In this document: piece by piece, positions 4,087-63,758 of the stretch | Layout of the letters: every line of letters begins with the position of its first letter | Numbering within the stretch: the stretch's first letter is position 1 | DNA from: Bugula neritina | Lineage: Eukaryota > Animalia > Bryozoa | NCBI GenBank assembly: GCA_964035545.1 | Contig: OZ037768.1 | Span: 3,752,741 to 3,816,740 of the forward strand | Reading direction: 5' to 3' | DNA: 64,000 bases | Made by a program: the position numbers and the translations under genes | Notes under the pieces: model-generated | What the model was told of the DNA's origin: nothing | Seen by the model: the letters and a program-made list of their open reading frames with translations, nothing else | The model's database searches: none

Positions 4087-7000
4087 CTACTCGTCCCAGT
4101 GTAAGAGACTCAAAAGGTTAAACCTCTCCATTTCTTTCAGCACCTCTATGATGGATTGTTTACAAGCTGGCACCTTTGACTTGTATGATTTCATATTATC
4201 AAGTTTGTACCAGTGATCCAACACAACCTCTACAACTTGACATTTATACCGCATGCTAAATTCATCAATCATCTTGATGTCTTCAGCCCCTATGTGCATG
4301 ACTTTATTTGTGAAAGTTTTCCAGCCAGGTCCCTGAATGATGTCATATTCATTGAGGTGTAGTTGGAAGCAAAACTTCTCTCTCTCCTCTCTGGTCATGC
4401 CCAACGGACAATCGGGCTCCGCGTCCGGATTAAATGTATATTTTAATATTTTTTTTAAGAATTCCCCAAAAGTTCTTTCCACGTTATCATTGGGGTATTC
4501 GGGTGCAATATCGAGAGTTTCTGGTTGAGCAAGATCTGGTTGGTTGAAGAATACCGACACACATGGCCTATCGTACACCCTCCGACGTTGTCTAGGTGTT
4601 GGCTTAGCTAGCTCCAGCATGCCTGGCTTAATGTACACAGAATCAACAAAGTTTTTAAACCTTGGTGATATTTCTTTTCGAACAATCTGTTTGAGTTTGT
4701 ATGTTTTTACTATGTCACTATACTCATCATCTACATGGTCATATATAGACTCCCCACCCTCTGCTTCATAGAACCAGAATGGAGGGTCATTTAGTGCCGG
4801 TGGTTGGCCACAGTCATTGGTTTCAACTGGTGTAGGTGGAAGTGGTGGAAAAGATGGAGACATCAGTTGCTGTATCTCATATCTGTCTCCATTGGACAGT
4901 CTATAAGTGAAGGTTTGGCTGTGAGGTGTTTGCAGGGTGATGCAGTCTGGAGGGATGCTCTCATTCCATAAAACTTTAATTTGCTGTGCAAATCTTTTAA
5001 AGATGTTTTCTGTAATAATGTGGGATATCTATTAATATTACCATATAATTAGGTTTAGATGAAGCAACTTGACAATACATTGTCAATTGATATTTGAAGC
5101 ATACGAGCATTTCTTCAGCGTTTCTTTCTGAACCCGTTACAAGCAACAATATACAGTTGGCATACAAGAGTATACTGTGTACAGTTAGTATACAAGAGTA
5201 TACTGTATAGTTAGTATACATGAGTATACTGTGTAGTTAGTATACAAGAGTATACTGTGTGTAGTTAGTATACAAGAGTATACTGTGTATAGTTAGTATA
5301 CAAGAGTATACTGTGTAGTTAGTATACAAGAGTATACTGTGTGTAGTTAGTATACAAGAGTATACTGTGTATAGTTAGTATACAAGAGTATACTGTGTAG
5401 TTAGTATACAAGAGTATACTGTGTGTAGTTAGTATACAAGAGTATACTGTGTATAGTTAGTATACAAGAGTATACTGTGTAGTTAGTATACAAGAGTATA
5501 CTGTGTACAGTTAGTATACAAGAGTATACTGTGTAAAGTTTGTATGACAGGCTCAAAAGTAATATGATAGAATACATTGCATAATATAATATATTATACC
5601 ACATTAAATAAGACATTATATTATACACTATAATATAATGCATTACGTCATATAATAGTTCTAAACATAATATATTACAGGATGTAATATATTACAGGAT
5701 GTAATATATTACAGGATGTAATATATAACAGGATGTAATATATTACAGGATGTAATATATAACAGGATGTAATATATCACAGGATGTAATATATTACAGG
5801 ATGTAATATATTACAGGATGTAATATATTACAGGATGTAATATATTACAGGATGTAATATATTACAGGATGTAATATATTACAGGATGTAATATAAGATG
5901 TTACATTAGAACATATTGTATGCCACGTTACACTTATTAAAAACCACCACTCATGTAGATGAATCTGCTAACTACTTTCTAAGAGTAAGTTACCTAGTAG
6001 ATACTTCCATCTCATGTATGGCATATATCTACAGCAACAAATTACTTCTACTTGGTGAAATGAACACCCATTCCTTACCCTGTGAGAAAGCACTGCAGAA
6101 ATGTGAAACACTACTCTCATCCAGTTCATCTCTCGAACCATCGTCTTGTGATAACGCAATGTAATGACCCCAGATCTGCAGCTCAGATACACTTGAATCT
6201 GAAATAGTTTTATTATACAATTAAGATTAGATTGAATGAATGGAGCGCAGTAAAACCCATCCCAAGGTCTCCCAAAGTTGTAATCTGAGCTACGTGTTTG
6301 TACAGCAACTTCCTCGTGATAATTAAGCCAATATACCCTTTCCCTTACAAGTCCCACCAACACTCATTTACAGTTAGTTGAAATGTACAAGCCATGAAAA
6401 GGAGATAATTAGAAAATAATTTTTTTGCCTAGAAATGATTTTTATATTTAGCAGCTCAAGATTTGTATTTGAATTTATCAAAGTCAAGAGCTGTTTAAAA
6501 TATTGGTATCTTCAAAAGCTGCTTTTAGTTCAACTGCAAAAAAGTTATAAATTTGGCTAGTTCCCCCCCCCCTTTAAATTTTCACGAAACTTGGTATAAA
6601 TTTATTGTTCACTGTATAATAAACGGACTTTAGCAGTTGGTAATAATTTTTGCTAAAATACCAATTGAACTTTTGTAGAGATTAGATTAGATTGAAACAA
6701 TAAGCTGATATTTGAAGAGTTCATGCAACGTTTACACAATTATTTTCGTAGAGCTCAGATGTTTTAAATAGGAAATGTAATTCCAAATGGAATTAAACCA
6801 GAACTTTATTCAACGTGAATTATTATTAGAATTATAAATATCTTATTGAAGGATGACAAGTGCTACATGTCCACTGTGCTATTTGTATATAATATGACAG
6901 AAATATTCTCTCCTGTCTAGGCTAACCAGTCACTATAGCTTTACCAGTCAGTGAAGTCACTATAGCAATCTGCACTGTAGCAAGTTGTCAACAGTTGAAG

Positions 7001-8516
7001 TCAAGCTTCCTTTTTGTAATGATATCATTTCTGACAACATTATTCACTCTTCCATGGGTTATACAAAAGCTATAGTCATTACAAAATATCTAGATTAGCT
7101 ACAATCAAAGAAATTCCACTTATCCAAGACAATAATTGCCCTCTACTAGGACAACTTACACTAGACTAGACTAAGATTTGAATATATCTTTGTATGCAGT
7201 TTCATGAGCAAATAGAGGGGAGAGTGGTACAACACTGAGCTGCGACACTGTGCTCAATAGAAAGCATATACTCAACACACCTCTATTTTCACTCCTCAAC
7301 TGAAAATTGTGACATAGTTTGGTGAGCTGTAATTTGAGTTGTCTGACGCAGTTGAAAGAGGCAGGTTTGTCCTTGTCTCGTAACACGAGATGTCTCCAGC
7401 CATTGCCCTCACAATCCTTCCATAGCAGTAAAAGACATAGCCGGTGCTTGCTTTTACTACAAGCAATACTATTAATTTACAAGAACACAACTAGGGCAGG
7501 TTTATAGTCACTATCCCTGTGAGAAACCCTGATAAAACAGTTATTTTAAAGCGGCTAATTCATATGTGGCACAGGAGCAGTTGTGACTGGATGCTTTTTC
7601 TAACATCACCAATGGCCTTTACTAGTGATTGAACCCATGGCCTTGTGTTTACTAAGCCAATGCTCTAACTCCTAAACGGACTGCTCCCTATCAGCTTTCA
7701 AGAACAAGTTTTCAGACTTACCACACAAAGGTGACTAGAAAAAAACTGTAAACTGAAGGCAGAAAAAGCCGAAATATTAATATTACATAAACAACTTGGG
7801 GCTGTAAAAATAAAAAGATCAAACTGAACCACAAACCAGATGCAAAAAAAAGAATATTGCGATTTTAATTCGCAGATATTTCTGTAGCTTTTGAGCTCTT
7901 GATAACTCAGTAAACAGCAGGCTGAGGGCTTACAAGGGTTTACGTGAAGCCAGTTGTGTTTATCCTGAATGAGTGTTGGGAGTTTAAAAGAGTGCAGAGA
8001 ACTAGAGGTAAGTAGCAGATTAGTGCAAGATAAGATTACAGCTGCCAAATTCATAGGATATGCTGACATTGATAATATCCAAGGACTTATAACACATGCT
8101 GATATATCTAAGGGCTTATAACACTTGTTAATATGGTATGAAAACAGAATAGTCTGTGTACCAATAAAATATTTCTGCTAGCTATAATCAAGATATCTGG
8201 TGATTTTGTTAATACAAAAAAAACGTTTGCTCATTATTCTACCACTAAAGCCAAACCTTGAAATGTCACACATGTGTCACAAAGGTCAGGCTACTTACAA
8301 TTTGACATTTTTCACAATAGCTGCTCCTATATATTTGAGATTTATTTTCTCAAATAGTTCATCATGCCTATCCGTCTTTAATATGTGAATTTTAAAACCT
8401 CTAGCTTGATCCCTGTGTGTGAACAGTTCCACTGTGACCTTCGGCTTTGGTGACCTGCTCACCTCTACATACTCAAGTTCACATTTGTGAACTAGCCGAA
8501 AGCCGTCTTCGGTCAT
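4087..8516 (-). CDS. Paralogue A: putative PH/PTB(Dok/IRS-like) adaptor with C-terminal death domain, ~478 aa
   Basis: Exons 8516-8299, 7456-7281, 6198-6079 and 5009-4087 have canonical GT-AG sites, phases 2/1/1, and stay open throughout (1437 nt). Homologous exon by exon to paralogues B and C. AATAAA on the minus strand at 4071-4076 lies just after the stop. Gene structure is well supported; domain names are inferred. Confidence 0.85.
5162..5535. repeat. 26-30-bp minisatellite (AGTTAGTATACAAGAGTATACTGTGT)
   Basis: Tandem array in intron 3 of paralogue A; each unit contains the inverted pair AGTATAC/GTATACT. Confidence 0.92.
5670..5895. repeat. 17-bp minisatellite (ATATTACAGGATGTAAT)
   Basis: About 13 near-perfect units with internal inverted pair ATTACA/TGTAAT. 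Confidence 0.93.
7574..7688 (-). mobile_element. tRNA-derived SINE-like relic (intron 1 of paralogue A)
   Basis: Minus strand reads GGGAGCAGTCCGTTTAGGAGTTAGAGCATTGGCTTAGTAAACACAAGGCCATGGGTTCAATCAC..., with degenerate A-box (AGTTAGAGC) and B-box (GGTTCAATC) at tRNA-like spacing, followed by a non-tRNA tail. No intact cloverleaf. Single copy in the window. Confidence 0.5.
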
Positions 8517-11500
8517 TTTAAAAGAACTTACAAGCCTAGTTTACCAGTCATGTGTAAACTACAAATATAAACCATACATTATAAATTGCTATATAGTACT
8601 ACTAGTAGTGTGATATGATAAGGACTTTATACAAACTAAAATAATTAGACAAGGTATCAAATTCAAATAAAACAAAATGAAGTCAAAATTACTATGCATG
8701 CCCTTAATTAAAGGAAGCGACTGCTTTCCTCTATTCAGCCTATTGGGCCCTAGGAAAATAAAAAATATGAAAAAAGCTGAACAGAAAAACTATGTTGTAT
8801 GCTAGAAATAGATTTGCTGGTTAAAGAATAATTGCAACAGTGTGTGAATTTTTAAAAAGTGTTCACTCAGTTTCAGATAATTCAATTTAATAGGAAATGA
8901 ACAAGTTCCAGCACATTTACTAGAAAGTATGCATAGTTATAAAGCATTATTGATAAAATTAGTCATTTAAACCTATAAGTGTAAATAAATAAATTTATTC
9001 TATAAACTATTGTGGATAACAATGCCCATCTATCTTTAATTAACATGAATAACTTATTTTGTATTAAACAAGCTGAAAATAACACAAAAACTAAATAAAA
9101 TTAAAAACTCACATATTTTAGAGTTCCCATAACACTAACAATAATCTTGTTTCACCACAAAAAATTAAATAATTATAATCATAGAAAAATGTTTGACGCT
9201 GATAATGGCATAAGATTTTGCAGAAATTTAAAATATAAACCTAGTTCTAGGACGGCTAGGACTTTACTCAAAATGTTAGCTGATTCTAGCAAGACTGTCA
9301 GTTGAATAATTGTTTAACTTTTCACAGCAATTACATGTTGCCATCTAGTCTACAATCTTGCATGGAGCCCCAAGGCCCCACATCACTATGGGAGGTATTT
9401 TGATGAGGTTTGCCAGACACAAGTGAATTTCAGTGCTAGAATCTGGTATTTATTCATCTCCCATTCTTTTTCTTTCACTCAGTAGGTTAATGATATGGCC
9501 AAACTAGTTCCTATTCCTTCATGAACCTACACAGTTCCAGTGAACTATTAAAGCCACACAGCAATGTTTTAGTATATTTCCCTTGTGTTAGCTTGCTGGA
9601 TATATCCATTACATTTTCATCTCTTACATTACACATCTTGCCACTTGGCTCTTTCATCTACCTTGCCACCTTCTATTTCCTTCTATGGAGCACCATTTAA
9701 CCATACACAAACGAATTCATTTAGAACAATTTCACCTTTCTATACCGCAAAAGTTGTTTTTTTCAACGCATTTATTTATACAAGTCAAGTATAAACTTGG
9801 TAAGTCTCAAGTATTTTAGTAAAATAAAAAGTATTAGATGGGGGAACTTTCTTGAATACATTAATTTAATAAATATAAATTACTATATTGTGAAAAATTG
9901 AGAAAAGCTATTAAACTGTAGGCTACAGTGTAGAATAATATGCCTTTACAGTTATCATCATATAAGTAATTGTAATGACTCATGACTAAGTACCTTGAAT
10001 CATGGGAGTGAAATTGAATGAGTATCAACCAGTAGATATATTACTATGACTACCAGTTTTTGTATTACAGAGAGTTATACATTATAACTAGCGGTTATTA
10101 TTACTGTAAGTATAAGATAACTACCATCAAGTATAAATATTAGTAATAGTTTGATTATGTCATTTATGAATGCAATATCATGATAATAATTGCAAGTGTA
10201 ACTATCTACATTACTTATGAAACGGTAAATGCTTATACTGTAATATGAGTAGAATGAGATAGGTGATGAGATTAGGTATCAGTATCACTATTATTATGAT
10301 TATGTTTATGCCTGAATTCTGATTACGATCCTGAGCAACTTGAGCTTAAGTTTAACTTAAAGTAGGTAATAGTAATATATTGAGTGATATTCTGTCAAAA
10401 TGAGCCGTTAAATATAATTTAAAGTGATCAATAGTAATAGTTAGAAATTAGTTTAAATATAAAACCAATACCATTATACTTATAGATAATTGCAACCATA
10501 GTAACATTAGGTGAGTATGATTGTCATTAGATCCAATATAAGTACTCAGTAACAATACTAGTATATCTTCCTGTAAGTGCATAGATTGAATAATAGACAC
10601 TGTCATATTCACTAAATCTAATTCTAATCACTAATCAGTAATCACTATTGGTGAATACAATTATTGAATAAAATTTAATATTATCATTATGACTTTGAGT
10701 TATCACCAACAGTAAGACTCCAAAGACAAAACTCAATCATGACCATATTCATATTGATATTGGTATTCAATTTTATATGGAATAATTATAGTTATACTTA
10801 TTGTATAGCTTGAACTAAAAGACAAACAGTAAAAAAGTTAAACTAGAACTAGAAGTAATAGTAGTACAAGCACAACTAATAGTAATAGTAATACTGTGAG
10901 CTAAATTTTAATGAAATTAAATAATAAAATTAAATACAATAATTAATAAGTCTTAGTCATTAATCATTATGATTACGAATAAGTGCATACAATTACATTG
11001 GTCATCAATACAGCTGAAGTTGTAGCCCAGTCATAGACTATTTACAGTCAAGAATATGATAAAATTTGGGTTTGACATAGCAATAGTATTAGTTATAGTA
11101 GCAGTAATTTCCATAACAACTTAATTGTTAGTTGGTGTTCAGTGGCGGAAGCTAGCAAGTAGGGAGCAAAGCAAGGCCTTCAAGTACAAGTGCGATGTTT
11201 CAATGTAAATAGGACAACTCTAAAGTAAACAAAGAAAATAAATAGAGAAAGTAACTCTAAAGTATGATATTGCTACTCTCATTGATATATAATTGTAACT
11301 AATTTTGATTCAGTGGTTATGCACCAGTGCTAACCTGTGTCTTTTGTTAGTCAATATTAATTATAATATAATTTCTTTTCAGCATCTTTAGTTTCAGTTT
11401 TGTAGTAAAGAGTATTAGCAAAGTTTTTGTGATGCAATGGTGAAAATGGTTGATATTTTTGGTAAATAGTATTTTACTTCCAGGATTTTTTTTTATCATA

Positions 11501-13309
11501 TAATCTTTGTCTGGTATACAACTAATTTTTTCAGGGGTGACTATTTAATGATGCAACTATTACTATCCTTTTGGTTGCTGGTTGAGATACGCTGGTATGG
11601 TATCTTCAATATTTAATTATATTTTAATTTGATAATTTAATTTCGACTATGTTATATAAAAGCATGGCTTATTAGTTTTGGAGTTGTTTTGTTGAATACT
11701 TTGCATAGGTCTACAGAGTGAGTATTGGTGAAATGTAAACTATTGAAGTATGTATAGCATTATTAAATAGTAGGCTTATAATGTGGTCATGTATCTGAGG
11801 CTAAAGCTTAATTAATTTAGTTATGTGTTTTTATATTGATTTCATTTGTTTAAAGTTAAGCACAGTTGTTGTTTGGGTCAAGTTCACCTTTGTAGGTGTT
11901 TAAGTAATAAATAGTGGCCAGTCTGTTATCTCTATATAGCCCAAGGGGCCATTCATTGTTTTTGAGATCTTGTCTAATAGATACCAGCCCTTCAGCACAC
12001 AGTTATAGTACACTCAATCCAAGGAGCCACATCAAATAAGCTAGCATTGCTCTGTCTTTCATATGCCAACTCAAGATTACAGCAAATACTTCAGCTAGCA
12101 TAGAGTGTAAAACTAAAATTTATCTGGTGATTTGAGTTAGACAGTTTGTTTAGTGAAATATATGAATTTTACTAGAATATATTGTGTGCTGTTGACAGAT
12201 AAGGATCTAGTCAACTGTTGCACTATGGGTAGAATTGCTTATTTTTAAAGACTGATGGTACAACTCCAGACAGATTTTTTAAAGAAATATAGTTTAGTTG
12301 CTGACATATGCATACAGCTTGCTGTTGATATTAACTATGTATATAATATGCCTACTTTCCCAAGCTCAGATTTTGAGGGAGTGGTGAGATGACCAACAGG
12401 GAAGTTATCTTTGTGGTTTTTATAATGGATATGCAAGCAGCTTTCTGGGTTTATAATACCTCTATTATGTTTTCTAGTTGCAGTTAGACGGTTCCTTGTT
12501 TACTTTAGTTACTACTTGACAATTTGTATACTTCTTGCACATTCCTGCATTAACCTGACAACTTCTGATATTTGGTACTTCTATGGGTATATGCTTCTCT
12601 TACTCACTGGGTGTCAATATTGATTGTCAGGTTAATCTTTCTGTGGAAGTTTTTCTAAACTGTATAGAGTGGCTGAATCCAGCACTTGTACCTCAAATTG
12701 TTGCAGTGCAGGTATTAATAGAGGTGACAATGAGCACTTCTAATGCTACACTAACATTTGTATGCCAACGAAAAAAACTAACATTATATGCAATTAACAC
12801 ACACTAGTTAATTTTGGGCAGTAACATTGATTATGAAATAATGTTTTATACATTATTTTATACTCAAAGTTTATACAATATTTACCTGAAAGGTTTTGTC
12901 TGCACAATGTTGCGATATTATGGTGTACACCTTTTATTATCTCCACTATCTGTTTATCACATAGCCTTAGAGCACTTTTATGAGACTTATCGCTACGCTA
13001 TGTCAAGGTTCTTTCCTTGCCAGCACAGAACAAAGACCCTGGCCTACACATCTCACATTGTCTATAGCCAAAGACTTCTAGTTTTATTGAGAATTACATT
13101 TCCAAGCTTTCAAGTTCCGTCATATGTGTGATTATAGATTGAATAGAACCCATAAACTTGAAAAATATATATATAATTTTAAGCTGTTTAAAAAAAGTAA
13201 GTGAAAAATAGGTCAAGTAAAAAATAATTCACATATATATATACAGCAAAGGGTATTCTGGGTATTTTGTGATGTCACACTTGTTGCTACATCAACTCTG
13301 TTTTACAGT

Positions 13310-16204
13310 TCATTCAGCTATGGGCCACCCAAGTTTATCAAGAAGGCGGTCTCGCTGCATTAGATTTAAGACAGAAATGACCGTCTGTTTAACGGCAGGC
13401 AATTTACATTTGTGAGAGTTTGCCACATGAAGCTTATACCAATGATCAAGTATAATTTCCACTACCTGATACCGATACTTGCAACTGAACTCATCGAACA
13501 TGTCTAAATCATCATGGTCCAACAGCATCACATGACTGGCGAATGTTTTCCACATGGCACCTTGCTCAACATCATACTCTACTAAGTCTAGCTGCCAACA
13601 GAATGTTTGTCTTTCGAATTTAGTCATTCCAAGAGGACAATGATCTGTGGAAGTTGCCCCACCTTTGGCTACATTATTGAGACACTCGGAGAGTGTGCTT
13701 TCAACATGATCACTGAAAGACTCAGTTGATGCGTTACTACACTCACTGCTGAGTCTGTGCAACAATTTAGGTGGTTCATATATCTCTTCGTGCGGGATGG
13801 CATCGCTGTCTATGGAGGATGGGTCAAACCGAGCAGTGCGGAGAAACTGATTGAACCGCTGGGAAGGAGGTCTTGACAAGACTAATCCAATGTGTTCTAA
13901 TTTCTTTGGTAAAAAAGGTGCCAGTTCATCCAAGTCTTTATATACCGTTTGTGGAGAAAATGCCGGAACCTGTAAGTCAAACCATTTTGGATCCACAACC
14001 AGACGAGGCAGTGTAGGTGATCGACACTGGAGTGCTTCGTTGCTTATTTCTTGTGGTTTCGGTATGTTTGGTAACATCTTTACTTCCTGAAACTCTCTAT
14101 ATACCCTGTCATAGGTGATACAGTGAAGTAATTGGTAGGTGCGGATGGTGTTATCAGCCACAGTACGGAATTTGATGTCGTGCATTTGAGATGAATCTTC
14201 TTGTGGTAATATGACTATTTCTTTGGAGGATTTATTATAAATATAACCTAAAAATAGATATTCTGTCATTATTTACTTAGATTCTAGGTAGTCTCTTTAG
14301 CATTAGATTACTAACGCAAGTAGAGTTATGGTTTAGTGGAATAATAGAAAGTTAGCCTGAAGGTAAAACTTCATTTAATATGATATTTGATATACAAATT
14401 ACATGCAGACAACTAATGTAACACAGCTAGTAAAGATGACACTTCGAAAATATGTCAGTTAGTAAATATGTCAGTTAGTAAATATGTCAGTTAGTAAATA
14501 TGTCAGATAGTAAATATGTCAGCTAGTAAAGGTGTCAGCCAGTAAAGGTGTCAGCTAGTAAAGGTATCAGCTATTAATAAGGATGAACACACCTGAGATA
14601 TTAGAACAGAATTGATCTATTGCAGAGTATTTTGAAAAAATGAAATCCAGCGAAACAATGGCTATAAATCTCTTGGAACACTGCAGTTCATACAGACCAC
14701 CATCTACAAAACAGAAAGCAAACTTGAAACAGCAGTTCAACACTAGAAATCAGATTATTGACTGAGGAGATACTGTACTAGCAGACTAGGAGACTTGTTA
14801 GGGGATATTAGCAGATATAACTCACTGTCAGCTGACTTCATTTGAAACTGTTTGGTGTACGACTGGCGATGTAGCTTGTCTCTCACCGCCTTAAAGGTGA
14901 CGGAATTAGCGGCAGCACTTGACAAGTGTGCGTAGCACCAGCCTGACGTCTGAGATTTCTTCCGGTAGAATAGTAATAAATGGTCATCATCTGGTCTAAA
15001 ACAACTTACATTCATTTAAAAAAATAGTATTTTTGTAAATTTGTTTTGAATATGTTGCAATGGGTTTGCTAAGTCAAAGTAGTGAACAACCCGACTATTA
15101 TGAAGGTAGGTGCAGTAATGGAGAAATTGAGAAAAGCCTGTGTTATAGACTAGAAATGTAGTAAAAAAAGTCATGTTCATGCAAGAATTTCAACCGGCAC
15201 CCCAAACCAAAATTTAATAAGAAAATTAAAGAACTTGGGCTATCTCAATTTCTTCACTATCGCTCCTATAAAGTGGATCTAGTTTTGCTAGGCATTGCCA
15301 TTAGTTGTGTGTGTTGAACTGAAACCTCAGCCCCTATGAATTTTAGTATAATTGACAGAATGGGAGAGGAAGATACAAAAGTTGATTAGCAATAACTGGT
15401 GTTTTTACCTAGTCCTACAGCAGTCAGTATACACATGTCAACTGTATGTAAGTGTCAAGCTGATCACACAATGTCCTATACTACATGACTTTACTTCTTT
15501 CCATGCCTTAATAACTAGAATCCTTAAACTACCCTTGTGTAAAAAGTCAGTGACAAGTAGGATATGATTTCGTTGTCATATGGGGTCAAGATCCTTTACC
15601 TTCAAAATAGCGATATTTAAGAAATAGCAGGTACTATAGCATAATATTAACTATCAATAAACTGCTATAGGGGTAATAGCAGCAAAAATAGTAGTCATTG
15701 TGGTGGACTACAGTAGAAGTACTAGAGGACTAGAGGGGGTGGTGGTGGTGGCAGAGGCAGCAGTGGCAGTAATAGGTAGCAGTAGTAGGTTATAGTAGTA
15801 GCAGCAGCAGTAGGTAGTAGTAGTAGTAGTAGCAGTAGCAGTAGTAGTAGCAGTAGCAGTAGTAGCAGCAGTAGTAGTAGCAGTAGTAGTAGTAGTAGAT
15901 AGTAGTAGGTAGTAATAGTAGTAGTAATAGTAGTAGAAGGTAGTAGTAGCATGAGTAGTAGTATATTTCATAACAATAGTTTTACCTACTTTTTCTTATG
16001 TTCCAGCTTAGCTGAAACAATAGCAGCAATATCCTCTAATTCAATCTCTTCTAACACTTTGGTTTTCTTTTTCTTAGACAATTTGCTAATTTTTAGACTA
16101 GGACGACTGCCAGCTGTAGTGAATTCTACTTGGGCATCATAGCATTTACATCTTTTCCCATGAGTTATAAAAGTTGTAACAAATCCTTCATTTGAAGTTA
16201 TCAT
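13310..16204 (-). CDS. Paralogue B: putative PH/PTB(Dok/IRS-like) adaptor with C-terminal death domain, ~477 aa
   Basis: Exons 16204-15990 (alternative in-frame ATG at 16240), 14995-14826, 14703-14593 and 14247-13310; GT-AG sites, phases 2/1/1, open frame. Shares the motifs GW, F.(L/M)(R/K)S, ELQ, S.RF..F, YxxP and CP.GM...WK.F...LDHWYKL with A and C. Confidence 0.85.
14448..14573. repeat. 16-bp minisatellite (AAATATGTCAGTTAGT grading to AAAGGTGTCAGCTAGT)
   Basis: Tandem units in intron 3 of paralogue B. Confidence 0.85.
15109..15266 (+). mobile_element. ~155-bp MITE family 1 (TA-flanked, Tc1/mariner-type), near full-length copy
   Basis: Starts ta|GGTGCAGTAATGGAGAAATTGAGA and ends TCTCAATTTCTTCACTATCGCTCC|ta (degenerate ~24-bp TIR, TA on both sides). 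Interior matches five other copies in the window. Lies in intron 1 of paralogue B. Confidence 0.8.
15710..15962. repeat. Compound AGT/AGC trinucleotide microsatellite
   Basis: (AGT)n/(AGC)n tract starting ~25 nt into intron 1 of paralogue B; source of the spurious poly-L/poly-T ORFs. Confidence 0.9.
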
Positions 16205-19057
16205 CTCACGATTATATGTCGCGCTATGTAAAATATGCATTGACAGCTGTTATTAGAGACATAATATAAAACATAGTTTATTAATTACTGATAGCCTAAA
16301 TTCAAGGTCTATCACAAAAAACAGCTTCTCCAATACTACATATGATTCGTAAGCAATAGGCCATCAACAGAGTCAGTGTCACCCTTTAAAGCCGACTCTG
16401 TACAAGACTGGAAGTTCATTTTACACTATATTCACTCATGGTCATGGTTTTGGTCTAAGGGCTATGCTTTTGAAAACGGTTACTTGAGTGACACTAACTG
16501 ATTTCCACCAATTATAATTTTGCTAATTTTTAGATCTTAGGCTATTGGACTATAATAGGACTATTAGTATTACATTATAATTACTATTAGCTACCTCTTA
16601 GAGCCAAAGTAAACCCTTTTAAATAGAAGCAGCTGGTAAAACCAAATTGAAATTACGCTGAATACTACATGCTCATAGTGATAGTACTAGTTATACTTAT
16701 ATATTACGTACAATTATATTAGTATTACATCATTTACCACTTTGACTTTAGGTGTAAGACTCCAGCTGTAGTTAGTGTTACACTAGATCTGTAGCTGTAT
16801 GTGAGTTAGAAGAATCACTATGACTATCAGAATGAGAATTCTACAGTTGGAGATTAGTAGACGTAGTGACTTGCACTACTCTTAGCTCCAACAATAACTC
16901 TAGTAGTAGTATCAGAGTATCACTATCAGTTAGAACTCAGAGCGAGAGTGATACAGATATGAAATAAGATCACGTGTACCTTTGGCTTTAGGCTTTAACC
17001 CTTTGATATCAGTATGCAACTGCTATAGGCGACAATTCCACAACATAAATTCTGACAAGTACTATAATAATTATTATAAAATGTAATTAATCATCATTGA
17101 TGTCTTGATATATTGATGTCAATTTCGGTATCAGTAGGAGACGTGCTAACGTCTATTATCGCTTCGCTTACCAGTACTGTGGTGGTCATTCAGAAGTTTA
17201 CTCTCAACTCATACTCGTCACCTATTGGTTAAATCGGTGAACTATGACATACTAGCTACAAAATAATATTATTATAGTGGGCTACAACTACTAAAGCATG
17301 ATCATATGAAATGATTGCTTCCCCCACATTCCGTCATTATTATTCATAAAAATATATAAGACGTAAAGCCGTCCTGTATTTTAGCCGAATGCATAATGGT
17401 TTGGAGGAACTTCTATTCGTTTTTCTACCCACGAAAAATGTTACCAGCTTCTGGGTGACTGGCATAGTTGAAGTAGCTTTACATAAGTAATTAATTCACT
17501 TTAAGGAATTCGTTTGAAAGAGGAACAAACGCAAACCTTATACAACATTATGACTTCATTGGATCACAGTTAACTTGCAGCCTACAGACTTTCAAAACTA
17601 AATACAAGTTGGTTTCAAAATCGAAAAGCAAAACTCGACTATTTAAACCGTCTAACCAATCATGCCATATTCAGCAAAAAAGTTCCAGAATACTTTCAAA
17701 CTTAACATAGCTACTTTTAACAAGTTCCAACTTTGAAGGCATGGACAGCTTGTTTTAGGAATGCCCTGTCCAGTTAGTGAGGGCCTGAGTCTATGATTAT
17801 AATAGGAAATCAAGTAATATTAAAGGGCTATAACCCCACACCCTCTGCTGTCACAGTATCTGCTACAATATATTCTAGTTATATGGCAGCAGTCAATAAC
17901 CGTTTTCTAAAATAAAATTGACTTTTTATCCTTGCCTGAAAAATACATTATATGTATAATGGGTATCAATTAAATTATATTGTGATAGTGGAAAATAGCA
18001 CTTATTAGGAACTAAACCTATCATTCTGTCATAAATGGTGAGTTATTTTTTCCCCAAAAAGTTAGATAACATCCAACAGGGCATCACAGGAGCCAACTCT
18101 AGGTTATCAAGTGCTGTGAGGCAACTATGAGGGGTCATATTTTCTTGAAATAAAAAAGTATATTTAAAGATACAAATGTAGCATGATACAGCGTGGTACA
18201 ACTGCTTGTATTATCTGTGGTTTAATCCAATTATTTATTAGAAGCATTTCCTAATAGTGGGACACCCACTGAGATGATTCATTATAAATCTAGTTACCAT
18301 GGCAATAGCACAACAAATACACTATTTCTTTTATGCATGGGAATAGCGTAGACTGTAGAATGTAGATCAATGAAACCACAACTACAAATCCATTGCAGAT
18401 CTATTCGAATCATGGCAATGTAGTGTATGTTGCGCATGCAGAGTTTTAAATTTATTGTCTCCAGTTTCAGCTAATTCACAAATAAGTGTTAAAGTTTGAA
18501 GCTGTCTGCTTTATTTCATAAGCAGACAACTTCTCATGCAACAAGCAGTCACCAAAACTTAGGCGTTTCTAAAAACTGTAATTCTGTACCTAAAACAGAA
18601 TCTATGGGCCTACACCTCAACGAAACTCATTAATCTCGACTCATCTCAGCTACAACTAAAGACATCTGTTTACACTTTCCACCAGCAGCTTCACATCTTG
18701 CAGAGGCCTACATGTTATACTCATGTGGAGAAAACTGTATTGCTGATGAATCACTAATTAGAAAGCTATAACACTATGACTATTCCAACTAAATGTGCAC
18801 ACTGCTGACTATTGCCTGAACGACTGACAACTTTACTGTAATAAACTAGGGCGCTTTCGGATTCCCTACGCGTAGCCTTACTGGGCTCATCGATGAATTA
18901 GCTCACTTTCTCCCCATCGAGTACTCTTCGATGAGCTTCTTTTTCGATGGGGTAAGCGATGGCTACTTTGTTCTGCTGTGAGATTAACACCATATAACTT
19001 CAGCATGGAACATGCCTGTAACAGCAACCTCGCCTTTTGTAATCGTTTGGTGGGGGT

Positions 19058-19195
19058 GGTGAAGAAATATTTTTAATAGCTCAGATACTTTAGTTTTCTT
19101 AAATAAATTTTGGTTTAAGGTTGAAATAACATAACTTCTTTTGCTACATTTCTAATCTAGAACACAGGTTTTTCTTAATTTGTTCATTACTGTAA
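19058..19195 (-). mobile_element. MITE family 1 copy, reverse orientation, degenerate
   Basis: AACATAACTTCTTTTGCTACATTTCTAATCTAGAACACAGGTTTTTCTTAATTTGTTCATTACTG matches the reverse complement of the family core. Confidence 0.7.
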
Positions 19196-19334
19196 TCCAT
19201 TTAGTTAACACACCAGATGATACATAATAATATCATCTCATAAGACATAATTAAGCTATAATTGGTAGAAATGCTAGCCACTACTAACTGCTATTTCCTC
19301 ATTGATGAAAAACACTAAACTCTCAATAAACAAT

Positions 19335-19486
19335 GGATTGTTCCATAAGCAGCGCGGGTTGGTGATGAAAGACTACTTTAGTTTGAGGTTCTCAAGTATG
19401 GAGTTAGGTCCCTCAACTCCAAACTTGAGAACCACAAACTAAAATAATCCTTGACCCCCAACTTGGTGCTGCTTATAAAACAATAC
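19335..19486. mobile_element. Mutator (MULE)-like fold-back MITE, 152 bp
   Basis: The whole element is an imperfect palindrome with ~70-bp arms (e.g. TTTAGTTTGAGGTTCTCAAGTATGGAGTT / AACTCCAAACTTGAGAACCACAAACTAAA). It begins with G, ends with C, and is flanked by an exact 9-bp direct repeat ATAAACAAT (19326-19334 and 19487-19495). Confidence 0.8.
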
Positions 19487-20523
19487 ATAAACAATAATCC
19501 ACTATTAGAGTGAATCAAGTCGATTGTATTTGAATACAGGTTGTCCTCCCTTTTCTATCTGACTTACAAATTCTGCAACTTCAAAATAAGTTGCTTTCAA
19601 ATAAATCAATAGATGTTTTTAAAAAAAAATAACTTCGCTATAGTAACCATGCTCACAATCTTCTTAAACTTTATATTTCATTTTTATTATTTCTGAAGAA
19701 ATTTCTATTCTAATCCATTCTTGATTATCCAGCTGCTTACAGGTGGATTTACATTCTACGTGTTATAATCTAAAAGGATGATATTGAAATATCCTAAAAC
19801 AGTTGTAGTAATCAACTCAATGAATTTTGATTTTACTCTGTAAGAATGATCTGCTTTTGGAGGTAACAGGGAAGTGAACTGTGGCTAAGTAGTGAGACAA
19901 CAACTTCAAAAAACTAACAGAGTGGTCCACTTATTCCAGCCCCAGTCTATCTTACTACTAGCATAAATAATATATAAATACCTTATAATCAACTATATAT
20001 ATACTGCTCTCCACAATAATATCTAAGGCAAATTATGAAAGTTTTGGGAAACGACCTATTAGAGCTGCATAAATGATGCAGTACAAATTATATTGCAAAG
20101 AGCACACAACTCTAATATTTTAGTTATTGCATTTAAATTGGAAATTAGACTTGTAATTTACAAGTATTTCCATTTTCAAAGGCTGAGTGAGTGTTCACAA
20201 CAGCTGGAACTATTTTGCTTATACATAATATATGCATATATAGGCTACAATGGAGAAATGCCATATCAATAAGCAACAATTTAATATCCAGAGGTGTGGG
20301 TTGTCACACCTCTTCCATCTCTGATTTGGCTGGAAACAAAAATGTGTAAAGTTTGCCATTCTAAAACAATCACTACCCACATTACTCTATGCCGATAGGA
20401 AGGTGCGAAGAAGCTGCTTTACTGAGCCCAGGTTTTAACAAACAATTTTATCAAAACAGTTGCCGACTTACAATTTAGATACTTGAAACTCTAGGGCCTA
20501 GGCTAACCTCCAGACTTAGCCTA

Positions 20524-20826
20524 GGGCCACACTGTGCGTAGCAAAGGTGTCCACTGTAGCGTCAGTGGTGCGTGATAAATAAAGCATTCATTTTTAAATC
20601 GCACTCGCTTTCAATAAAACGCAATTTACTAGAATGTAGCACTAAAATAAAGAAATTGGGCTCGCTGAATAACTACCAGCCAATTAGGTGACGACGACAG
20701 AGACGATTCGTACTTGCGTTGAAAATGCAGAGCGACAAGTGCGAATGTTTTCTCAACGCGCACAGTGGACACCTTTGCTACTTGTGATTTCAATTTTCGC
20801 GTGCGAAAATACGCACCGTGTGGCCC
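20524..20826. mobile_element. 303-bp non-autonomous TIR DNA transposon (MITE)
   Basis: TIRs GGGCCACACTGTGCGTA / TACGCACCGTGTGGCCC with TA on both sides, plus a perfect 20-bp subterminal inverted repeat GTAGCAAAGGTGTCCACTGT (20538-20557) / ACAGTGGACACCTTTGCTAC (20762-20781). CpG-rich relative to flanks. Superfamily uncertain. Confidence 0.8.
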
Positions 20827-21213
20827 TAGGCTTACGGGTGCTAGGCCACACAACCCTGTGTTGATTTAGGACCTTCTGCTAAATCTATCAGTGCTCAGCA
20901 TGAAGTTCATGCATGCTAGTCATTTGCAATTTCTATGAATGGTGACATTCAGCTAAATAAATTTCTTATGCAGAAATATTGTTTCATGTACGATGAAATA
21001 CTTATGCAATAATGATAAGAATAGATAGAAATATAAAGCTATAAAGGTCAGTTTTATGCTGATAAAATTTTGATTTTGTATTGCACAAGGAGAGGTATAT
21101 TAGAAATAAAAAACTAATAAAGAAGCAATATTTGGCACATAAATAAAGCAAGTAATGTTATATACAAAATATAAAATACAGTAAAAATACAAAAATAATA
21201 TTCTAAATTATAA

Positions 21214-24200
21214 CTACTCATCTTGCCAGCCCATGTGGTATAAGAGATCAAGTTTATCTAAATTGTGTAGAACTTGTATAATAGAATGTTTGGTAGCTGG
21301 AAGTAGACACTTAGCTGACCCGAGTGAGTAGAGTTTATACCAATGATCTAACACCACCTCCACAACCTGGCATCTATATTTACAACTAAACTCATCAATC
21401 ATCTCCAAGTCAGTCTGATCAAGACTCATGACTGACACGGCAAACACTTTCCACCCTTCACCGAGGAGCACGTCTCGTTCTACTAAATCCAGTCTCCAGC
21501 ATAGAGTTTCTCTCTCACTCCGTAGCATACCTATAGGACAAGGGTCTGCGTATATAGACGCACCTCTACGCATCTGTCTAAAACATTCCGCCAAAGTATT
21601 TTCCACATTTTCTTTCACAAATCTATCAGGTTTTATTTCGGGATAGTTTTGGATGACCTGTGAGAACCGAGGACGTCGATAAACTACATCCTGTCTGACT
21701 ACCTGTTCAGAATCGGTAATTGTCTCCACCATTGTGGGCTCAATATTGTTGACTTGATTGAGAAACACGTTGAACCTATGTGAAGGTCGTTTAGTGCACA
21801 CTCTCTGAATATGGCGGTACTTCCTTTCTAAATATGGCTGAATATCAGCTGATGCCTCGTTATATATGTCAATGCCGGGATTTTCTGGATTTGGTGGAAC
21901 ACGCACAGGCAGCCAGAATGGTTTTTCGGAGAACTTTGGTACCGACCCACATGCATATTCTGGAGGTATTGGAGGTTTACGGAGAGGTGCAGGAGGACAA
22001 ACAGGCACACGCATTGGTTGAGCGGTGGGCGTAGGTGGCAGAGGGGATGATGGGTCCCTGGATTGTAAAGTTGTAGATACTTCCCTAGAGATTCTGTCTG
22101 CAGTTGTCCCAAACTTACATTTGTATCTCAGTACAGCACCTTTGGCTGTTTGAAAGACTATACTAGTAGTCGTAGTCGAGGCATTTGATTGGTTATACAG
22201 ATTAAGTTCATTTTCTGATTTGCTGAAAATGCATTCTACAATATTACAAAGAAAATGCTTTTAAGTAACTCATTTAGCTGTGGTTTATGTATATACGTCT
22301 AATAAAAGTGATAATTACTGTAAAGGCTTGAGGAGTTGTCTCTATTACAGTTTGAAAATGAGAATACAGCTAACAATTAATTGGTACAGTCAATACTTCG
22401 ATGAAAAAGGAATCTCAAGTTCTATTACAAAAATACAGATGATTCATACACATTTTCCTTATGTTTAAGACATTCACCTGACATTGATGTGAGCAGCCAA
22501 TAGAAAACATGCAAGCCTTAGTAAACATTGCCTCTATGTGAGTTCAAATATGTCAAAAGTTTTGAAGATCTATCAAAAGAAAGCTTTGTTGGCTATGAAG
22601 CTGCAGGTATATATTCACAGTGTACAGAAAAGTTAAATTCTACCTGCACAGCTTTGTTAATATTTAAATTTTAGAATCTACCATGTGCGAGGTAAATAAA
22701 AATTGCATCTGTCGTTGAAAATTGGAAATATAAAGCCATTAATTTTGATCTATGGATTGAAAAAAAATAAGGTGCTAGCAGTAGCTAGCTACTTGGATAT
22801 TTTAGGGGCCAAAGAGTGACAAACATTTCACTGACTGATAGTGACAAAAAAGTAGAGGGGAATGGGACCCCCCCTCCACCAGAAACATGTTAGAATGCCT
22901 TAGGTGCGTAGGTGTAAAGCATACCTGTAATAAGTTTGAAGTACTGTACCATATCTTTACACTTGAAGGGTATAGTAGAAGACTGGTCATCCGGTATAAT
23001 AGATACGTACTTCAAGGAACACTGCAGCTCGTAAGGCGTGTTATCTGCGAACAGACATAAAAAAACATGTTGTTATGAGATGAGTTAACTTCCTCCTATC
23101 TCAGTATAAAAGTCCTAATTAACAAATTAGAATGTCCTTTCCAGGTGAAAAACAACAGATTATTACCAAGTGTTTAAATAAAGATTCAACAAATATACTG
23201 GAAACTAATTAAAAAGTTAGTTATACTACATTTATATTATTTATACAGCATGATGTATATTATATTCTACTATACGGCTTAACTAACTTGAAGGTGGTAC
23301 ACATTTTAACTCCATGCCGAAAATATGATTTTATATTTCAGTTATATTAAAAAGGCATTTAGAACTAGTTACTACAAATAATGATATAGAACAGAGCTGG
23401 TTCTACACAGGGCCAACTATTGGTGTCATGTTTCAAGCCTTGCAGTGTAGTTACCAGTTACTAGTTACTACTTAGGCTTGTTAAAACTACGTGTGACACA
23501 GTGAACATTTTATACCAAATAATTGTTGCAGAAAAACTGCATCATCAATCAATTGCATGTTACATAAATCAAAACCTTTGCATTTGGTAGTATTTGATGA
23601 GATGTTAAATAAAAAACCAATTTGAGAAATTTCTATGCTGAGGTTTTAGACAGTGAAAGCCATTGACTGCCAGATGACCTTCTTTTCAGCTAACTGTTGG
23701 CGAAGTTTACATCCGCAGATGTCACTAAAGTGTGTGCTGCGTGTGTGTGTGCTGCGTGTGTGTGTGCTGCGTGTGTGTGTGCTGCGTGTGTGTGTGTGTG
23801 TGCTGTGTGTGTGCTGCGTGTGTGCTGCGTGTGTGTGTGTGTGCTGTGCGTGTGTGCTGTGTGTGTGTGTGTGTGTGTGCTGTGTGTGTGCTGTGTGTGT
23901 GCTGTGTGTGTGCTGCGTGTGTGCTGCGTGTGTGTGTGCTGTGTGTGTGCTGTATGTGTATGTGCTGTGTGTGTGTGCTGTGTGTGTGTGCTGTATGCAT
24001 GTGTGTGTGTGCTGCGAGTGTGTGTGCTGTGTGCTGCATGTGTGTAATGCACCAGAAGAGTAAATGCTTCAAACATTCTACCAGGAATGTAGGAGTAGCT
24101 TTACGTATTGAAGAACGATATTTTGCAATAAAATTTGAATATGTGCAGTGCTCATTTCACTTGCAACAGAATGTGATGTAGCAAGTGAAATCCAAGCGAT

Positions 24201-25813
24201 TTTGAAGGCATTAATAACCTCATATTACACAATATTCATCCCTGGATGTAGTCTTCCAATGTTACAGAGTGAAGCGAACACCATTGCATAGCCTTCGTGG
24301 CAATAACAGAAAGTCGTAACCCTGAACATTGTGCCTTTACACCTACACTGAGTTGCACCCTAATAACTAATTCACTTTGCTGAGATGCGAAAAGTATACT
24401 CTGAATATACAGCAAACCTGGGTCAGATCTCAGTGGGAAAATTCCGGATGTGAAACATTTCAGAGAAAGTTTTTTCTTCAACTCGGTGACACAGCTGACT
24501 CCATTCAAGTCGTCTGAGTTGTGTAGAACTATCTGATTCCACTCCCGGCAGTCACCAGTTTTCATACAGAATATAACCAGGGCTGGCAGGCATTTCCTGC
24601 AACATTTAAGACATTGAGAATGAAAATATATAGTTGGATAATTCAGAAGTGAAATTAGCCATAGAACTGGCAGGTGTCCATGTGTGAAGGTGAATAACTT
24701 GTATATTTTGTGTAGGCAAATAGTATACCACTATGGTATGGTTATTTATCAGTGTACAGTTTATTCTGAAATATAATAATTACTATCTGAACCCCCACAG
24801 AGCAACAGCAGATGTGGTGCTTGTTTAATACGACTCTGGGAAGGGCACCCTCTAAAAGCTACTATTTTGAAACCTATAGGTTATGTTACGGTGAAAGAAA
24901 TCTTTAGCACATAAAGCTCAAACATAAGGTTTTCACTTAAAGTATTGTATAATTGCTAGTTTTACTATCTTGATTCTAGACTAAAGAGCTGGCATAACCT
25001 AACTATATTCCATGAATCCATAAGTTCTGAATACAATTAGGCAAGTTACCAAAATTCAGATTGCCAGCCACACTCTGCTATCAGAAATGCCAAAACTGGT
25101 AGTATTATAAAATATGTTATGGATACAAACTATAGTAATGAAAGTTTTCATATCTGGAATGCATAGGGTTATGTCTGAAGACATTGTTTTGCAAATTAGG
25201 GTAATTTAAGATACATTTCAAACAAATATTTAATACATAAAATAATTAGTTTGGAAGTTATTTCATACAATGTGGCAAGTACTTTAGGGTGTTATCTCGT
25301 TACAAACTATTCAGCCGAAACTACAAATCCATTAAAATATTCTTATACTTAGTTTTTTACCCTCTTCCTTAACAGTAGACATACTAGAGTGGGAGATTGG
25401 TGCCCTATGTAACCCCTAGATGCAAGCACCAACTGGCACCTGCCGGTGCCCAGCTATGCCAGCAGACTTGTTAAACGTGCAAGATTGCACAGAGCTGAGC
25501 ATTTGCTGTGCTTTCATTTAGATCTCCATAAACTGCTTCAGATGCTGAACAACTAGAGCAAAAGCAATAATCTAAGGCTTATTTGAATAAAATAGGCTCA
25601 CCCCTTCTTAACTTTCAGTGTGGTTAGAGAAATGGCCCCAACTTTATCTAACCAAATCTCTTCATAGATCTTGCATTTCTTATCTGTGCCCTTTACAACT
25701 TGCAGTTTGTGTCTGTCACCAGAAGGAAACAGCTCAACCTTCACTGGAATTGTTTTGTTGAGTTTAGGTTGTGGAATGTAATTCAAATGATATTGGTCAC
25801 TCAGCAGTGTCAT
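21214..25813 (-). CDS. Paralogue C: putative PH/PTB(Dok/IRS-like) adaptor with C-terminal death domain, ~510 aa
   Basis: Exons 25813-25602, 24596-24418, 23044-22925 and 22235-21214; GT-AG sites, phases 2/1/1, open frame (1533 nt). Exon 3 is 120 nt as in A and contains YELQCS as in B. Confidence 0.85.
23730..24045. repeat. GT-rich compound microsatellite ((GT)n interrupted by GCT/GCTGC)
   Basis: Visible tract in intron 2 of paralogue C; produces the Cys/Val and His/Thr ORFs in all frames. Confidence 0.93.
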
Positions 25814-37357: not shown

Positions 37358-38541
37358 CAGTGAAGTCGACAACTTTTATTCCATTTACCACTTAATCTCT
37401 GTTAATTTATTTTGACTCAATTTTCTCCAGTAATTAGTTTGTTTATAATGCTGTCCTAACAGGCACTATATACTGTATAGTATCTTTTATGTTCAACCTG
37501 TTACTATAAATTTATTTCAAGGTGCTATTTTAAGGTTAACTTCAAAACTTAATGAGATTTGTTTTGAGACATATTATTGACTATTTAAACCTTTGCTTTG
37601 TATTGCAGCTTTTATTAATTGTACTGTTCGTGTGCCACCAGAAAATTTTGTATGATTAAAAAGCCTGAAACTAACCAATACAGCAACTAATGTTTTATGA
37701 AATTAAATTGTGCTATACAACTAATTACATGCATAAGGACTGTAAAGATGGTTTTTTCAATCAAAACACAATGATGTCTATATAGCAAGATAAGTTTGCA
37801 TGTGCTAAAAAGTTTTAAATAGCTTTTATTGTTGGCCATATGTCAGAATAATATGTTAACTACCTGAAAATCTTTAACTTTTAATTATGAGAATCAGCTG
37901 TAATAGCTATTTAGTTTATTTGTTTAATACAAATTAAGTATTTTGTCATTTTATATAACTACCATAGCCAACTCTTGAAGTTTTCAAGTATAGTAAGAAA
38001 GTTTACTTAGTGTTGAGTAGGCATGAAATGAATTATTGAAACCAATTTTGCATTAAATAAATTATTTGTAAATAAAATTGCTTTGTAAATTTATTATACA
38101 AGCTTTTATATTATTTCATAAATTGTAGAAGACAAAAATGCAAAATTAAATCAAAACTATAATTAATAGAACTAACTTTTAAATAACATGTAGTCAAATC
38201 AGACTCTTCATACAGCTTTAATTGGTAATGATTAGCATGAAGACATCAGAGTTGTTCTCTCCTATTTTCAGCTAACGTTAGGTTTTTGACTGGTTCAAAT
38301 GCATTATTATTTATGTTAAAGATATTTTATTTTTATAATTATAAAATGCAAATCAAATAATAAATTTTAAAAGTTCACGATAAAGTGGTTTATGTATAAT
38401 TGTCAAACCATTATTTCTGTCGATGTTTTTATGTCAAAGGTCATCGAGAGGTTAAATGTAAAGCACCTGGCACATTTGAACGTTTAGGATTGTTGCTCAG
38501 TAACTCTACGAGAGCAAAAGGAGAAATGGTTATAGTTTAGT

Positions 38542-57683: not shown

Positions 57684-58478
57684 TTACAAGCTTTTAACTC
57701 TGTATATGACAAACCATCCAACAATTGCAAAGAACAAGCCGAGCATCTTCTGAACAGTAGTATGGAAATACAATGATGTCGAAAAGAGCATAACTTCCCA
57801 GATAATCGTTAGCAATACAAGACAAACCATGATCAATCTTATTAGGATTCTGTAAGATATTGAAGTTTCCTTAGAAGAGGACGTGTTGTTTCTTTCGATG
57901 CTATCAATCCTTTTTGAGACTTGATGAAGAACTTGGGATTCTTCATTTATTACAGAGGAACAGAATGCCAAAAGAAAGCAATGCCCAGATATATCAAATC
58001 CGATCCATGTGTGACCTTCTTCAATACATGAGCTTTTAGTAACCGCTTTTGGGTTGGTACATGAACTAGTTGCGCCATCAATCCACACAAAACCATTTGC
58101 ACAGATATACCAGTAAGCAGTCGCAAGGCTCAACCGAATAATGGCTGATGACAAGTTTCTAACTTCCTTATGTTCAATCATCTTGGTTAAAAGTATTAAC
58201 ACTAACACAGCACTCAGAGTCCAACCCCAACCAAGCTTTACAAAATATTGATTGAGTGCATTATTTTTATCAGAAAAATAACTTCTCATGGGTCTCTGTA
58301 TGTCAGTTAAAAAACTAACAAAAAATACAACTAAACAATAAACAATTAGTTTTTTTACTATGTTAATTGTTAATATCAGCCGTAAGATAAAATCAAGTGA
58401 GTTATTAAAAAAGCTTGCAGTGGGTAAAGAAGTGATAACCCTTCGACTTCTTTTGGTAGAATCTGCAGAAACAGCCAT
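57684..58478 (-). CDS. FITM2: Fat storage-inducing transmembrane protein 2 (FIT2, acyl-CoA diphosphatase), 264 aa
   Basis: Uninterrupted ORF with several TM segments and the FIT-family motifs SYFSDKNNALNQYFVKLGWGWT, GFDISGHCFLL and YFHT..K..G. There is an acceptor-like ttattttag just upstream (~58495) and a GTGAGT donor at 59131, suggesting a 5' UTR intron. Confidence 0.92.
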   Translation of the reverse strand: MAVSADSTKRSRRVITSLPTASFFNNSLDFILRLILTINIVKKLIVYCLVVFFVSFLTDIQRPMRSYFSDKNNALNQYFVKLGWGWTLSAVLVLILLTKMIEHKEVRNLSSAIIRLSLATAYWYICANGFVWIDGATSSCTNPKAVTKSSCIEEGHTWIGFDISGHCFLLAFCSSVINEESQVLHQVSKRIDSIERNNTSSSKETSISYRILIRLIMVCLVLLTIIWEVMLFSTSLYFHTTVQKMLGLFFAIVGWFVIYRVKSL

Positions 58479-63500: not shown

Positions 63501-63758
63501 TATGCAACTTATCTTTCTACAACGTACCACTTGTACGTAACTTACCTTTCTACTACTCATATGTGACAAGGTACTGACTACTGACTTACTGATGAAATAG
63601 TGAACTTACTGTAGCCAGGACTCTGGTCTCATGCAGGAGGAGACGGCGGGGTTATAGTCACACAGAGCAGAGACTATATGGAACCTGATCTTCACCTGTA
63701 GACCAGCACCTAAGTTGGCGCCATGTGCAATATCTCGCAGTTCCTCCAGCAAGGACAC
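60538..63758 (-). CDS. EIF3C: Eukaryotic translation initiation factor 3 subunit C, last nine coding exons (5' part outside window)
   Basis: Exons 63758-63610, 63458-63249, 63145-63022, 62918-62694, 62388-62109, 61824-61631, 61412-61209, 61013-60851 and 60671-60538 join in frame. Motifs: [50 protein letters not shown] domain [14 protein letters not shown]...SKMIINEEL, and an RG-rich tail. AATAAA (minus) at ~60321-60326. Confidence 0.96.
62955..63036. repeat. 22-bp tandem repeat spanning an eIF3c exon-intron junction
   Basis: CCTTGTAGTAGAGGTGACAGTA x3 plus a partial unit; on the minus strand CACCTCTACTACAAG|GTACTGT. Confidence 0.9.

Follow-up and report, generated by a model that had tools for sequence, protein, structure and literature searches.

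Can a docking module of the kind found in tyrosine-kinase substrates and a death domain be carried by a single polypeptide? This question is raised by three paralogous minus-strand genes, here g1, g2 and g3, which span positions 4087 (the g1 stop codon) to 25813 (the g3 ATG) of a 64-kb stretch of contig OZ037768.1 (the window), animal DNA with a GC content of ~35%. Each gene is predicted to encode a tandem of PH-superfold domains, a linker bearing conserved tyrosines and, at its C-terminus, a divergent death domain. This is a new domain architecture made from known modules, and it is expressed and under selection. Only these three copies are found in the whole 216-Mb assembly.

Domain architecture of the encoded proteins

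The N-terminal region was modelled with AlphaFold2 (AF2) from an alignment of 15 rows (A4) that comprises full-length orthologues, g3 exons and last-exon fragments of relatives. Full-length alignments containing exon fragments from the window (A1, A5) misplaced those fragments, and A4 was therefore used for the model. Residues 1-225 of P0004, the B. neritina orthologue of g2, were modelled with a predicted local distance difference test score (pLDDT) of 86.9 and a predicted template-modelling score (pTM) of 0.83, giving seven strands and a helix (7-115) followed by seven strands with helices (119-219). At E <= 1e-3, Foldseek matched this model to tandem-PH proteins only, including Rtt106, Dok7, IRS-1, FARP, BBS5 and centaurin; the best structural match is the Dok7 PH-PTB unit, and the IRS-1 PH-PTB is also among the matches. 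Because of this fold and these tandem-PH matches, we read the front end as a PH-superfold tandem of the Dok7/IRS kind, in which the model places a PH fold at the N-terminus and a PTB fold directly after it. The same layout is found in g1 and g3. Neither half of the protein gave a meaningful match when searched with phmmer against the sequences in PDB, and a homologue search with the N-terminus of the relative from Watersipora subatra yielded no new relatives.

The tandem is followed by a linker of ~125 residues, which proves to be a set of five conserved short motifs: L-P-P-x-P, C-G-x-P-P...P-F-W, (I/V)-Y, S-x-R-F-x-x-F...P and (I/V)-Y-x-x-P. In column counts over ~28-30 family members, the prolines of the first motif are invariant (P225 in 28/28, P228 in 29/29), and R296 and F300 are kept in 25/29 and 25/30. 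Two tyrosines are near-invariant, Y268 (26/29) and Y322 (26/28), the latter in a YxxP context with P325 (27/28); the YxxP site that the original prediction placed in the linker is thereby present throughout most of the family.

A block of ~105 aa at the C-terminus is common to the three minus-strand open stretches that end at 4090, 13313 and 21217, with 51-55% identity. On sequence comparison, this region is a divergent death domain homologue. A profile-profile comparison (hhalign) of the family C-terminal alignment (A3) with A6, an alignment of eleven bona fide PF00531 matches collected in this genome, gave a probability of 80.6%, an E of 1.3e-5 and a score of 34.0 over 68 columns, which correspond approximately to helices 2-6 and include the invariant tryptophan column of A6. 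In a control with 200 column-shuffled templates, scores were 9.4 +/- 2.4 with a maximum of 17.9, so that 0/200 reached 34.0 and the control mean lies ~10 standard deviations (SD) below the observed score. Both the reversed template and the N-terminal alignment gave a probability of <0.5%. Death is also the only recurrent Pfam family, matching 9/29 family members (best E 2.5e-5), with the orthologues at E 0.0019-0.018. For residues 345-477, every top language-model neighbour is a Death cluster (scores 0.86-0.88), which serves as a lead only. A conserved VESTL / CPxG segment precedes the death-domain match. The C-terminal death domain that had been proposed from the letters alone thus gains support from the profile match with its control, from the recurrence of Pfam Death and from the language-model neighbours; we infer its six-helix fold, because no confident C-terminal 3D model was obtained. 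The regions and motifs are distributed as follows.

14074..16204, minus strand, g2: PH-PTB tandem, with a PH-like domain at ~residues 1-117 (exon 1 and most of exon 2) and a PTB-like domain at ~residues 118-221 (end of exon 2, exon 3, start of exon 4)
13706..14074, minus strand, g2: linker, with LPxxP at 14074-14060, C(G)xPP...P(F/K)W at 14026-13982, (I/V)Y at 13945-13931, RFxxF at 13858-13844 and (I/V)YxxP at 13783-13769
4851-4837, 4812-4774, 4746-4732, 4662-4648 and 4578-4564, minus strand, g1: the five linker motifs in the same order
22041-22027, 21951-21913, 21867-21853, 21777-21763 and 21684-21670, minus strand, g3: the five linker motifs in the same order
13313..13705, minus strand, g2: death-domain-like region, residues 347-477
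4090-4482, minus strand, g1: death-domain-like region
21217-21606, minus strand, g3: death-domain-like region

Gene structure, expression and selection

Gene models were built from stop-to-stop frames and splice signals. All three genes have four coding exons with GT..AG at every intron, phases 2,1,1 and intact frames.

4087..8516, minus strand: g1, 478 aa, coding exons 8516-8299, 7456-7281, 6198-6079 and 5009-4087 (218/176/120/923 nt)
~8557 (5' untranslated region, UTR) to ~3219 (3'UTR), minus strand: g1 transcript, with a 3'UTR of ~870 nt, from the B. neritina transcript contig L036
13310..17012, minus strand: g2, 477 aa, coding exons 16204-15990, 14995-14826, 14703-14593 and 14247-13310 (215/170/111/938 nt)
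~17012-16741, minus strand: 5'UTR exon of g2, from RNA contigs; the exon with the g2 ATG begins at ~16223
21214..25813, minus strand: g3, 510 aa (model), coding exons 25813-25602, 24596-24418, 23044-22925 and 22235-21214 (212/179/120/1022 nt)

Expression of g2 is documented by contigs from four runs (X1, X3, X6, X8) in four studies, which skip 14245>14591, 14704>14827 and 14995>15990 and also join the 5'UTR exon at ~16745 to ~16221. These contigs, labelled RNA by guess only, are spliced, because the introns are skipped at splice sites, and the N-terminal exons of g2 are therefore joined to the death-domain exon; with 90-99% likeness to the window, the contigs must come from a sister taxon. The joint at 14704/14827 given by the aligner is non-canonical; it was moved by one base to the adjoining GT..AG (14703/14826) on the assumption that the sister taxon carries a substitution here. 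Evidence for g1 comes from L036, a 2357-nt transcript contig of B. neritina with the coding sequence of P0036; its four aligned blocks are 8557-8299, 7456-7281, 6200-6079 and 5020-3219, and they support acceptor 7456 and donor 7281 as the borders of g1 exon 2. The original prediction had described three same-strand genes with identical four-coding-exon structure and these phases, given exon lengths of 212-218, 170-179 and 111-120 nt for exons 1 to 3, and proposed RNA as a check on whether the N-terminal exons join the death-domain exon. The frames and introns agree with the first, the spliced models with the second, and the g2 and g1 contigs bear out the junction.

A side observation concerns the start of g1 exon 2 (7450-7456), where two in-frame acceptors (TTGTAG|TAAAAG|) are separated by 6 nt. 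The upstream one is used in the B. neritina transcript, and alternative use would gain or lose two residues (K-S) of the PH-like domain.

Compared with the B. neritina transcript, g1 has a ratio of nonsynonymous to synonymous substitution (dN/dS) of 0.17 overall, at a dS of ~0.19. The ratio falls from 0.34 in the PH-PTB part to 0.086 in the linker and 0.017 in the death domain. The linker is under purifying selection, and the C-terminal domain is the most constrained part of the protein. Between paralogues, 48-53% of residues are identical in the C-terminus, against 27-34% in the N-terminus and 21-31% in the linker. We take the three genes for old tandem duplicates.

Relatives and genomic setting

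Among 1.84 billion representatives, phmmer found 29 clusters, all matching via the C-terminal half and one of them full-length. In the 22 of these 29 clusters that were looked up, the named members belong to Bugula neritina and Watersipora subatra only, and the others are metagenome or run assemblies; among named sources, the family is restricted to bryozoans. The W. subatra relative, XP_067933734 (502 aa), is annotated as an "uncharacterized protein". In B. neritina, the trio is present as the consecutive loci EB796_015983-85, with 93-96% protein identity, although the public annotation of two of them (015983, 015985) is incomplete.

EB796_015983 / KAF6025732 (P0009, 266 aa): g3 orthologue, last-exon open reading frame (ORF) only; the last exon of g3 is 96% identical
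EB796_015984 / KAF6025733 (P0004, 477 aa): g2 orthologue, 94% identical, equal to the g2 model
EB796_015985 / KAF6025734 (P0012): g1 orthologue, without 24 exon 1 residues that are found in the transcript protein P0036

The genes had been called unrecognised from the window alone. Gene models from B. neritina and W. subatra do exist in GenBank and RefSeq, but they carry no domain annotation, which the present analysis provides for the "hypothetical" Bugula and Watersipora proteins. That no characterised protein of this architecture is known agrees with the survey, in which all relatives are unnamed or "hypothetical/uncharacterized". The PH-PTB-(YxxP)-DD arrangement was not found in the literature or among named proteins, InterPro architectures lying outside the scope of the search.

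Two long environmental contigs (L023:8190-11500 and L025:8321-11140) contain recognisable exons 1 and 2 upstream of a fused exon 3+4, and the full architecture is accordingly older than the bugulids. The third intron is absent from these two and from L001:728-1879, while exons 1 and 2 stay separate; the fused exon reflects intron gain or loss within the family. A further relative, P0034 (L011, run SRR17902662; 743 aa), is much longer; its PH-PTB-like front is only weakly similar, and ~350 Pro/Ser-rich linker residues separate it from the death domain. The family N-terminus aligns with P0034 collinearly but weakly (hhalign E 0.017), and the front end of P0034 is therefore only tentatively homologous.

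Tandem arrays are present in introns of all three genes. An additional dispersed repeat of ~156 bp lies at 15104-15260 in g2 intron 1. Genome-wide, it has at least 2,241 first-look candidates, of which 40 scored copies are 87-91% identical, and, given its enormous depth and many loose ends in RNA-like contigs, it is embedded in many transcripts. It is probably a SINE-like (short interspersed nuclear element) or MITE-like (miniature inverted-repeat transposable element) element; an Rfam scan of the whole window, this repeat included, gave no match. The neighbours of the trio in the window are ordinary animal genes.

5155-5895, g1 intron 3: 28/82-bp and 17-bp arrays
14424-14577, g2 intron 3: 16-bp array
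15776-15963, g2 intron 1: (GTA)61
23730-24045, g3 intron 2: degenerate GT microsatellite
38500-55000, plus strand: Bicaudal-C homologue (KH_1, KH_BICC1, SAM_2)
57684-58478, minus strand: single-exon FIT (fat storage-inducing transmembrane) protein
61100-63600, minus strand: eIF3c (eIF-3c_N, PCI)

Proposed function, rival readings and known systems

By analogy with Dok proteins, we lean, cautiously, towards reading these proteins as cytoplasmic adaptors in which the PH-PTB unit, the YxxP linker and the death domain would link tyrosine-kinase-type docking to death-fold assembly. The PH-PTB unit would bring the protein to the tail of a membrane receptor, and possibly to lipid. Phosphorylation of the conserved tyrosines, above all that of the YxxP site, would then create docking sites for Crk/Nck/Abl-type SH2 proteins, whose SH2 domains prefer pYxxP; Dok proteins use sites of this kind. 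The death domain, finally, may make homotypic contacts with itself, with the paralogues or with one of the canonical death-domain proteins of the genome. The outcome would be a connection from tyrosine-kinase-type docking to immune or apoptotic death-fold assemblies. A bolder version, in which a docking family private to bryozoans physically couples receptor tyrosine kinase (RTK)-style recruitment, through the Dok7-like PH-PTB and phosphorylatable YxxP, to oligomeric death-domain signalling of the MyD88/IRAK/FADD type, we regard as doubtful. To our knowledge, a direct bridge from an RTK to a death fold has not been described in any animal.

Several observations weigh against the adaptor reading. 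The architecture is shown, whereas the signalling role is proposed by analogy with Dok proteins. Pfam PH (PF00169), IRS (PF02174) and PID gave no match up to E 10 in the full-length orthologues P0004, P0036 and P0038 or in P0034, and because of this the "Dok/IRS-like" front end of the original prediction holds for fold and arrangement, as seen in the AF2 model and in Foldseek with Dok7 as best match, and not for membership of the sequence families. The genome has canonical IRS-type PTB genes of its own, with nine PF02174 matches that all lie outside the trio. Alignment of the family N-terminus with these IRS-type PTB exons (hhalign) was not significant (E 0.074, 15 columns) and covers the 'GLYELQ' strand only. 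Judged by eye in A4, neither the basic lipid-binding signature of PH beta1-beta2 nor the phosphotyrosine-binding arginines are clearly conserved: a basic pair (IFKR / ISRK / ICKR / IFRR) is often found at the position of Dok IRRYG, where g2 has IYNK and g3 IFSK, and the basic beta1-beta2 loop of g2 (GKRRK) is not kept in other members. At the C-terminus, the window proteins fall below the Pfam Death cut-off, with g2 at 13.6 bits (E 0.078) against 22.6 and no match for g1 or g3, whether exons or last-exon ORFs were used. The sole 3D model that covers this part, a single-sequence AF2 model of full-length P0004, has six helices at 341-471 and is untrustworthy at a pLDDT of 35. Lastly, RNA supports g2 and g1, whereas g3 is modelled from its homology with these two genes, its open frames and its GT-AG splice sites.

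How far do these points favour other explanations? The main rival keeps the same domains without the tyrosine-kinase link. Here, the proteins would be phospho-independent, peptide-binding PTB-like scaffolds that, like CCM2, ICAP1 or KRIT1-F3, attach to receptors (adhesion receptors or others) through the NPxY/F tails of the latter, and their death domain would serve oligomerisation or docking to a receptor that has a death domain itself (TNFR, p75 or UNC5 type). We consider this possible but rather unlikely, since among the matches listed Dok7 PH-PTB is the only one that spans both domains, and a near-invariant Y-x-x-P together with a second conserved tyrosine is what would be expected of a phosphorylated docking protein. 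Departing further from the adaptor reading, the C-terminus might be a harmonin-homology-like domain, of the sort found in CCM2, or another helical bundle that only looks like a death domain, making the proteins PTB-plus-helical scaffolds without death-fold signalling. The low Pfam Death scores and the want of a confident 3D model speak for this, as do a C-terminal profile search against PDB sequences that returned no death domain and Atlas structure neighbours of the low-confidence model that are unrelated folds. It is nevertheless improbable, considering that the profile match to death domains of the same genome lies ~10 SD above shuffled controls with the invariant tryptophan column in the aligned block, that Death is the one Pfam family to recur and that neither CCM2_C nor any other helical-domain Pfam family matches.

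The gene models could also be spurious, for instance with exons stitched together from unrelated ORFs, or describe decaying pseudogenes. Beyond the model status of g3, this would fit with the near failure of tblastx to match the N-terminal exons of one paralogue to those of another. Spliced contigs for both g2 and g1, intact frames in all three genes, the g1 dN/dS, the same trio at consecutive loci in B. neritina and the co-folding of exon fragments into a high-confidence model all argue otherwise, and the explanation, largely refuted for g1 and g2, is very improbable indeed.

The interest of the adaptor reading lies in the fact that death-fold adaptors, which form oligomeric immune or apoptotic platforms, and Dok/IRS docking proteins, which relay phosphotyrosine signals, follow signalling logics that normally stay apart. 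A chain that carries both modules and is conserved, expressed and under selection would be a natural experiment in pathway rewiring and a way into innate-immune or cell-death signalling of colonial bryozoans, on which hardly any work exists. The surprise is moderate, because unusual architectures are a familiar feature of death-domain proteins in invertebrates.

Four known systems were considered and set aside. For the ZU5-UPA-DD supramodule (UNC5, ankyrin, PIDD), no ZU5 or UPA chain occurs in the top 50 of Foldseek/VIA, and the bryozoan N-terminus has PH-superfold domains with C-terminal helices. Double-PH histone chaperones of the Rtt106/FACT type have good Foldseek E values but template-modelling (TM) scores of only 0.33-0.37, a root-mean-square deviation (rmsd) of ~10 A and Z below that of Dok7. 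CCM2 combines a PTB domain with a C-terminal harmonin-homology domain, whereas the bryozoan family has two PH-superfold domains, a death-domain C-terminus and no CCM2_C Pfam match. MADD/DENN is the only named family we met that has tandem PH-like domains as well as a death domain, and it is a structural neighbour of the N-terminal model at a TM of only 0.44. Pfam PH_MADD, PH_MADD_pen and Death_MADD did not match in the family proteins, and MADD, with which they have no sequence in common, is a very different protein, a large DENN-domain guanine nucleotide exchange factor (GEF) for Rab proteins whose death domain is N-terminal to the PH pair, not after it.

Canonical death-domain proteins (PF00531; MyD88, IRAK/Pelle, FADD, UNC5, ankyrin, p75) share a profile-level match with the C-terminal ~130-residue region, but the bryozoan family combines this domain with a PH-PTB unit rather than with TIR, kinase, DED, ZU5-UPA or receptor ectodomains. 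IRS-1 (PDB 1qqg) has the PH-PTB tandem in common with it (Foldseek E 1.6e-4, probability 1.00); the inter-domain orientation differs, as the TM of only 0.34-0.36 and the rmsd of ~12 A indicate, and IRS proteins have a much longer tail and no death domain. The bryozoan front end is most alike in arrangement to that of the Dok family and Dok7 (PDB 3ml4), in which a PH-PTB unit is followed by C-terminal YxxP sites. Unlike Dok7, the bryozoan proteins do not match Pfam PH or IRS in sequence, share a structural identity of only ~10% and have a tail that ends in a death domain, and we know of no Dok, IRS or FRS2 protein with such a domain.

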